From Iphione sp. A-MEVVRFRX5 (lineage: Eukaryota), in contig OZ320314.1 in assembly GCA_976226885.1 (NCBI GenBank), forward strand, positions 30,938,001 through 31,002,000: a DNA stretch of 64,000 bases, written 5' to 3'. The notes below the pieces were generated by a model. It was not told where the DNA came from. It ran no database searches and worked only from the letters and a program-made list of their open reading frames with translations. Shown here piece after piece: positions 44 to 1,276 of this stretch. The number at the start of each line of letters is the position of its first letter. Positions within the stretch are counted from its first letter, which is position 1. Both the position numbers and the translations under genes were made by a program.

Positions 44-126
44 TTCTTGGGGAGGAACATCGAACGTTACTGTACGAAGGTCCACCTGCGTGTAGGTTTC
101 AATGCAGGGCAGAACAAAGAAAATTC
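44..126 (-). CDS. STOM: Stomatin/MEC-2-like gene, SPFH-start exon, downstream copy (A)
   Basis: The reverse strand reads tttcttctttcAG|GA ATT TTC TTT GTT CTG CCC TGC ATT GAA ACC TAC ACG CAG GTG GAC CTT CGT ACA GTA ACG TTC GAT GTT CCT CCC CAA GAA|GTAAGT. This translates to (G)IFFVLPCIETYTQVDLRTVTFDVPPQE, matching the stomatin motif GLFFILPC..DxRTxxFDxPPQE. The exon is 83 nt, phase 1 to phase 0. Downstream exons lie outside the window. Confidence 0.93.
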
Positions 127-899
127 CTGAAAGAAGAAACCCGGCAAGTCCCATCGTAGTTAACACTGACAGTGACATGTGGTGCATAGAACCTAAGGGT
201 GAAAAAAACATGCTTTGGTATAGAGGGTAAAGTTCCATAGAAACGGCACCAGATGGAGAGAACTTTCGGTTAAAATGCCAGGCTCTGAAGCTATTCTATT
301 GCTTTGTGTCCAACAATTTTTTTGTTTTCTTTTTTCATTCCCGTACCGAGCTATCCAAAATGACTGATATACCCGACGGTGAGTTATAACATCGTGAACA
401 GTCTGTATCTCTCACTGACGATTACATTTCAAGAACTTAAAGGTGAGCTTCAATAGAGGCATTTCGAAAGCGGACGATTCTCTCACACCAAGTGTCGTAT
501 TCTGTCTTGGCGACGGTGCAGGTGGATGTCGGGGAACGAAGCAAAGTCTAGGCCATCGCTGCAAGAACAAAAGCACAAACGGTGCATAGCGACTGGGTCG
601 GGGCACGATTCCCCCGATTCAGGAAAAGAAGACTCGACTTAGCGATGGCACCTTAAACTGCCTATTTGTTCAATTTGTGCAGAGGGTACACAGATTTTAC
701 CAAAACAAAGATAGAGCTTGGTGAGACCATGAGGTTATCGTGACGTCAGCGCTGATATCAATACATAGCATAACATAACCAACCTGACAGCCCAAAGCAA
801 TCGTTTTCTGTCATACATGTATTTACTTTTACAGTCACTCCTGTAATGTCTTTTTTCACGGGGAATGTCTCTCCGAAAGAACAATAGCTGCTGCCAAGG

Positions 900-1057
900 C
901 AGGCCCGTAGCCAGGATGTTTTCTGGGGGGTATCGGAAGATACCCCCAAAACCCAACAGGTGGAACTGATTTATTTTTACCTCTATAAAAGCCTATTGGC
1001 ATTATTGTTTTGGGGGTATCGGACGATACCCCCGATACCCCCTTGGCTACGGGCCTG
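900..1057. mobile_element. 158-bp MITE (non-autonomous DNA transposon)
   Basis: It has perfect 14-bp terminal inverted repeats CAGGCCCGTAGCCA (900-913) and TGGCTACGGGCCTG (1044-1057). The direct repeat CAAGG flanks both ends (895-899, 1058-1062). Subterminal GGGGGTATCGGAxGATACCCCC palindromes are present at both ends. Confidence 0.88.
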
Positions 1058-1193
1058 CAAGGGATCCCTCTGTGAGGTTGCAAGTGTGTCAGATGTGGGT
1101 TTAAGGTGCCATTGAGGAATCTGCCCGGCCACAAAAAAAACAAAGGTCGCTGAGCGTTTGGCGCATTCGGTCTGTGTTGGGACTGCGGCTTAC

Positions 1194-1276
1194 CTCTTGT
1201 GGTGGCACGTCAAATGACACTGTTCGCAAGTCTACCTTGGTGTAACTTTCAATGCATGGCAGCACAAAGAAAATAC
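1194..1276 (-). CDS. STOM: Stomatin/MEC-2-like gene, SPFH-start exon, upstream copy (B)
   Basis: The reverse strand reads ctcttccttgtAG|GT ATT TTC...CCA CAA GAG|GTAAGC, translating to (G)IFFVLPCIESYTKVDLRTVSFDVPPQE. It is 83 nt, phase 1 to phase 0, and is visible inside ORF 1101..1346. Confidence 0.93.

Follow-up and report, generated by a model that had tools for sequence, protein, structure and literature searches.

Tandem duplication of an SPFH-domain exon, probably used as mutually exclusive alternatives, in a stomatin gene of Iphione sp.

Two tandem copies of one 83-nt exon were found in a stomatin gene of Iphione sp. A-MEVVRFRX5. The gene appears to be an annelid-like stomatin orthologue, and the sequence evidence suggests that its two exon copies, named A and B, are probably used in a mutually exclusive manner. 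The window, i.e., the whole stretch of DNA analysed, is 64,000 nt long (contig OZ320314.1, positions 30,938,001 to 31,002,000). Stomatins form cages that regulate membrane channels, mechanosensory ones among them; the high-resolution structures of these cages date only from 2025–26.

The gene lies on the minus strand of the window. The hairpin exon (4114..4005) encodes (A)DESTHNGLGCCGWLLTIISWFVVVITFPLSLCVCMK, an intramembrane hairpin, and contains the motif TFPLSLCVCMK common to the Capitella and Dimorphilus orthologues. The constitutive upstream exon (exon 3, 3706..3634, 73 nt) encodes VVQEYERAVIFRLGRLLSGGAKGP + G. The 3′-end of exon 3 is a single base of this Gly codon, and the remainder is supplied by exon A or exon B. 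Exon B (1276..1194) and exon A (126..44) are both 83 nt long and of phase 1, and they encode the peptides (G)IFFVLPCIESYTKVDLRTVSFDVPPQE and (G)IFFVLPCIETYTQVDLRTVTFDVPPQE, respectively. The B-A intron (127..1193) comprises 1067 nt without a stomatin exon. Exon A ends 43 nt from the window edge; these last nucleotides (1..43) are the start of the post-A intron (gtaagtagac...), and the remaining gene lies past the edge. An imperfect AGG trinucleotide repeat of 40 copies (4352-4470) precedes the hairpin exon at a short distance and belongs to an intron or the 5′ region. A candidate first coding exon at 13114..13085 (...VVIGA), with similarity to the N-termini of relatives, was rejected because it had no donor at the right place. 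Rfam families were not detected in the window, and Pfam gave no match for the two longest of the window's other ORFs.

The acceptors of the two copies have a pyrimidine tract and AG (...tttcttctttcag/GA and ...ctcttccttgtag/GT). The donors, GAA/gtaagt in exon A and GAG/gtaagc in exon B, are both ordinary U2-type. The copies differ at 20 of 83 nt; 14 codon changes are synonymous, and the other three give the residue swaps T/S, Q/K, and T/S (A/B). Their ungapped similarity (77%) is confined to 39-133 versus 1189-1283, that is, to the exons and a few splice-site bases. A preliminary description of this DNA had given the same coordinates, length, phase, splice sites, 1067-bp gap, and difference counts, all of which were reproduced. 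With either exon peptide as the query, tblastn returned exactly two matches in the 64 kb window, exons A and B. Relatives' proteins as queries showed that further stomatin exons, including the next exon VLTKDSVTV..., are absent from the whole window, which agrees with the earlier claim that the copies have no other stomatin exon between them. Since the next exon is found neither between the copies nor elsewhere in the window, A and B must share their flanking exons.

Taken with exon A, the window encodes 88 residues, which matched Pfam Band_7 (PF01145) at 32.8 bits over profile positions 1–50, the curated gathering cutoff being 23.6 bits. The closest full-length relative among the matches listed was P0400, a Logan transcript product, which showed 92% identity over these 88 residues, scored 139.9 bits against Band_7, and aligned with human stomatin over 260 residues (E 7e-125). 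Capitella teleta CAPTEDRAFT_172850 (91%), the JGI product P0418 (90%), and Dimorphilus gyrociliatus DgyrCDS7321 (89%) were also highly identical to the 88 residues, and the hairpin of all four relatives ends in TFPLSLCVCMK. P0400 and the related protein P0399 have the full stomatin architecture, with SPFH2, wall and cap helices, and a C-terminal beta strand. The subfamily pattern sought was a hairpin with a conserved Pro, followed by (K/R)xxxEYERAVIFRLGR and then the LPC cysteine. These N-terminal features are present: 4114..4005 encodes ...CGWLLTIISWFVVVITFPLSLCVCMK, followed by VVQEYERAVIFRLGR and then GIFFVLPC. The alignment to human stomatin takes in P47 and C87, the roles of which have been described (PMC12344292, PMC13724742). 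On this sequence evidence, the gene is classified as a true orthologue of stomatin, and its source as an annelid-like animal.

By alignment, the duplicated exon corresponds to human stomatin residues 80–107. This segment contains the FF-LPC stretch that dips into the membrane, C87, D89, and the first beta strand, and the three A/B variable positions are human S90, K93, and S100. The alignment to C87 bears out the proposal that the exon carries the palmitoylated LPC cysteine and the start of the SPFH fold. Recent cryo-EM entries show the human stomatin assembly as consisting of 16 subunits. Density consistent with palmitate at human C87 was described in two structure papers (PMC13724742, PMC12407830), and D89 is salt-bridged to R67 where membrane and cytosol meet (PMC12344292).

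As 83 nt is not divisible by 3, including both copies in the mRNA, or skipping both, must disrupt the reading frame. When B is followed by A, the twentieth codon of A is a stop (TAA at 69..67), the same stop that had been noted before for joint inclusion. We propose that the tandem duplication in this stomatin gene is used as a mutually exclusive pair. Exon 3 would be joined to one of the two copies, B or A, which in turn would be joined to the next exon, past the window. In an mRNA with B and A, translation would halt inside A, and such a non-productive mRNA would probably be removed by nonsense-mediated decay. Only mRNAs with a single copy would yield protein. The two predicted isoforms would differ at three residues just beyond the palmitoylated cysteine, where SPFH1 lies at the membrane surface. 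Isoform B would have the ancestral sequence, and isoform A would have two Ser to Thr replacements and a conserved Lys replaced by Gln.

Selection on the two copies was evaluated by the Nei-Gojobori method. Between A and B, the synonymous differences (Sd 16 over 20 sites) gave a saturated pS of 0.80, and the non-synonymous differences (Nd 4 over 64 sites) gave a pN of 0.06. This contrast implies that copy A did not drift as unused DNA. Random substitutions on an unselected copy were also simulated, scoring the outcome of three or fewer residue changes and no stop. With 10 substitutions (of the 20 differences), this outcome occurred in 0.3% of trials (probability 0.003), and with 12 substitutions in 0.015% (probability 0.00015). 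The nucleotide identity to four annelid outgroup exons was 71–78% for A and 77–78% for B, so A is no more distant. The suggestion that the duplication is old and that both copies are under purifying selection thus held up; purifying selection on both at the protein level is supported by the codon comparison. Throughout almost its entire history, exon A appears to have kept its reading frame intact, which would be hard to explain unless it is translated.

The exon B peptide is identical in Capitella, Dimorphilus, Helobdella, the Logan transcript L085, and the JGI transcript L001. Exon B has no replacement against five annelid sequences, and its 10 differences from the nearest relative, L001, are purely synonymous. 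The absence of replacements in B against the annelids places all three replacements on the A lineage, and the comparison marks copy B as ancestral and copy A as derived. Among the 469 relatives retrieved that carry the exon, 425 have Lys or Arg at position 14 and none has Gln. Positions 11 and 21 are Ser or Thr across the family. Since Ser and Thr vary at these two positions and Gln never occurs at position 14, K to Q is the sole unusual replacement; the others in A are mild. The Lys/Gln difference had earlier been read as a charge change, and it is a real one at a position strongly conserved as basic.

Four annelid loci and one nemertean locus orthologous to this gene were scanned with both peptides. 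The exon was present as a single copy in Capitella (L084, 13503-13586; next intron about 540 nt), Owenia (L086, 56208-56291; about 6.9 kb), Dimorphilus (L087, 10176-10259), Helobdella (L003, 15748-15831), and the nemertean Tubulanus (L088, 36600-36683; about 11.7 kb). It is 83 nt long and of the same phase in Capitella, Owenia, Dimorphilus, and Helobdella. A Solemya paralogue also has one copy. The preliminary description had put forward conservation of the pair in related genomes as a check, and the pair was absent from all five. One copy at each of the five orthologous loci makes the A/B pair specific to the lineage of the window. A scan with P0001 of the 80 metagenome loci listed revealed no tandem exon pair or close relative; the one double match among them (L016) was considered as a tandem pair and proved to be two genes.

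The pS between B and the L001 exon was 0.51. Since the pS of 0.80 between A and B is higher, the duplication probably preceded the split from the L001 species. The L001 contig stops 74 nt into the intron after its B-type exon, a length too short to show an A-type copy. In L001 1241-1665 (JGI sample 3300008013), the first exons and the B-type exon follow one another without introns, and an intron-like sequence (gtaaggtc...) comes next; the post-B intron was thus retained in this transcript-like contig.

The use of exon A in mRNA is suggested by selection and by exon anatomy, and A may be regulated and the isoforms may differ in function. In L001, the transcript of a relative, the B-type exon directly follows the upstream exon. 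The B form is carried by every transcript and gene model from the closest relatives, and an A-type peptide (Gln at position 14) was found in none of the 469 relatives with the exon. No protein of the source species was among the database matches listed. The MERC proteins P0006 and P0011, which have a T...T exon, were considered as exon A orthologues and set aside, as identities of 26/28 versus 25/28 cannot decide. These two proteins, from a marine eukaryote transcript catalogue, belong to the same orthogroup and are near-identical through ...SVDAVVYY, after which they continue as NIKNPMAAVCKIENY... and RVSNATVSVANVENAH..., respectively. This divergence points to a further alternative region in one of the relatives. 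P0390 (Paragonimus kellicotti), P0391, and P0123 (Acipenser sinensis, contaminant flag) carry the block from the hairpin to PPQE, or a later block, twice. They were considered as B+A co-splicing and rejected as duplicated gene models; the doubled blocks look like assembly or annotation duplications, not biology.

Other readings of the two copies were weighed against mutually exclusive use. If only B were used, A would be a silent or lately retired duplicate and one protein would be made. The uniform B form of the relatives' proteins and transcripts, without any A-type peptide, and the missing pair at the five orthologous loci fit this reading. However, exon A combines saturated synonymous sites with three residue changes, no stop or indel, and consensus splice sites, a state that random drift would reach with P about 0.003 or less, and it is not more diverged from the outgroups than B. 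Given this preserved state and outgroup distance, any silent phase of A must be very recent, and we consider the use of B alone unlikely. Exon A might also be a regulated poison exon, included after B to lower stomatin via nonsense-mediated decay, and not a translated alternative. The early stop in B followed by A fits this reading, and a 1067-nt intron is long enough for both exons to be spliced in. A poison exon, however, needs no conservation in the frame in which A replaces B, and in that frame A shows a synonymous to non-synonymous codon ratio of 14:3; we regard a poison exon as quite improbable.

We give very little credence to the placement of A and B in two transcription units, whether by a partial downstream gene copy or by an assembly or haplotype duplication. 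Relatives often have stomatin genes in tandem (Dimorphilus CDS3832-3834; neighbouring Solemya Band_7 genes), and the sequence downstream of A lies outside the window. On the other side, exon A is internal (phase 1), has an acceptor, and lacks a separate set of upstream exons; the sole hairpin exon and exon 3 of the 64 kb window lie upstream of B, in line with the earlier view that two separate genes are unlikely. The divergence of 24% and the unrelated flanks exclude a haplotype or assembly duplicate, an artefact that had likewise been judged unlikely beforehand.

Steric exclusion between A and B does not apply, as the B-A intron of 1067 nt is far too long. The 10-mer TTCACCCTTA (transcript sense) occurs upstream of both exons (194-203 and 1308-1317), with an offset of 36 nt relative to the exons. 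A complement of TTCACCCTTA, as expected for docking/selector pairing, was not found in the gene as far as the window reaches. The 10-mer is probably residual homology of the duplicated intron around an old branch site (branch-site-like CTTAC). The only strong structure found is local and lies inside the B-A intron: a foldback at 899-1058, one long hairpin of -94.6 kcal/mol (z -7.45). It consists of nested inverted repeats, including two copies of the 22-nt palindrome GGGGGTATCGGAAGATACCCCC, and has no other copy within the window. It looks like a foldback or MITE-like palindromic insertion, and no link between it and exon choice was found.

Tandem-duplicated mutually exclusive exons are a known general class (reviewed in PMC9013439 and PMC9741552). 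Like the classical cases, A and B are adjacent homologues of the same length and phase, both under selection, and their isoforms differ in one short homologous segment. They differ from that class in that exclusive use is predicted from sequence and no competing RNA structure was found. Splicing of a stomatin gene is also described for C. elegans mec-2, whose isoforms A, B, and E have distinct neuronal roles and probably co-assemble (PMC8934639). In mec-2, unlike in the A/B pair, it is the C-terminus that is varied, by an alternative 3′ splice site and a large cassette exon (PMC8934639). The duplicated exon of the A/B pair lies inside the SPFH domain, whereas the mec-2 isoforms do not rely on such an exon (PMC8934639).

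Other alternative exon pairs occur in the stomatin family. In Owenia fusiformis, four consecutive transcripts (CAH1787616-19) pair up, with proteins equal or near-equal in length, and the paired isoforms (e.g., P0414 and P0511) are distinguished solely by one exon, TSLDAATHQWGIKVERVE or STLDQATDNWGIRVERVE. This tandem pair, of the type LDxATxxWGI[KR]VERVE, is located at 65341-65397 and 66492-66548 of L086 and is annotated as isoforms. Unannotated pairs of this type were found in Capitella teleta (L084, 14935-15009 and 15280-15345) and in a Solemya velum paralogue (L002, 23190-23255 and 24164-24217). The Owenia pair resembles A/B in gene lineage (hairpin ...TFPLSLCVC[MI]K) and in having tandem homologous exons, which the annotated Owenia isoforms use one copy at a time. 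Unlike A/B, the Owenia, Capitella, and Solemya pair affects another exon, about 90 residues further on, in SPFH2. Several annelids have it, as does a bivalve; the A/B pair was found in this window only. The source genome may also contain the LDxATxxWGI[KR]VERVE pair past the window edge.

A further tandem pair, VLSRDSVTV...NVE(D/N)(Y/F), was found in Daphnia magna (L089, 15125-15223 and 16123-16221). The RefSeq isoforms X2 and X1 of the D. magna 'band 7 protein AGAP004871' have one copy each, are equal in length, and differ at 9 residues; isoforms X1/X2 of the same protein in D. pulicaria show the same. As in A/B, a stomatin-family gene has two tandem copies of one SPFH exon, whereas the exon concerned is the one immediately after the position of A/B and the pair arose independently, in arthropods. 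The Daphnia tblastn matches cover 33 codons (99 nt) each, and with exons near that length, the frame would not enforce exclusivity. These comparisons suggest that stomatin genes have gained alternative exon pairs repeatedly and at different exons, in the source worm, in Owenia/Capitella/Solemya, and in Daphnia. The full-text literature searched on stomatin, band 7, or CG42540 with mutually exclusive exons yielded no paper on any of these pairs.

The A/B pair is best read as a lineage-specific alternative exon pair whose members are most likely used singly. The A isoform is predicted to neutralise a conserved lysine beside the lipid-anchored cysteine; in human stomatin, this lysine (K93) lies six residues after the palmitoylated cysteine. 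We speculate that exon A could be a cell-type-specific regulated switch that drops this near-invariant basic residue and alters the contact of the SPFH1 rim with the inner leaflet, lipids, or enclosed client channels, a reading that we hold to be possible and rather doubtful. If it is true, A and B subunits might mix in one 16-subunit cage and give it graded properties. The A/B pair is a natural variant of only three residues on the membrane-facing rim, next to the lipid anchor, and the charge loss at the conserved lysine offers a small, ready-made mutational hypothesis for the rim surface. Beyond that, the pair would be one more case of alternative exon use, a well-understood mechanism.
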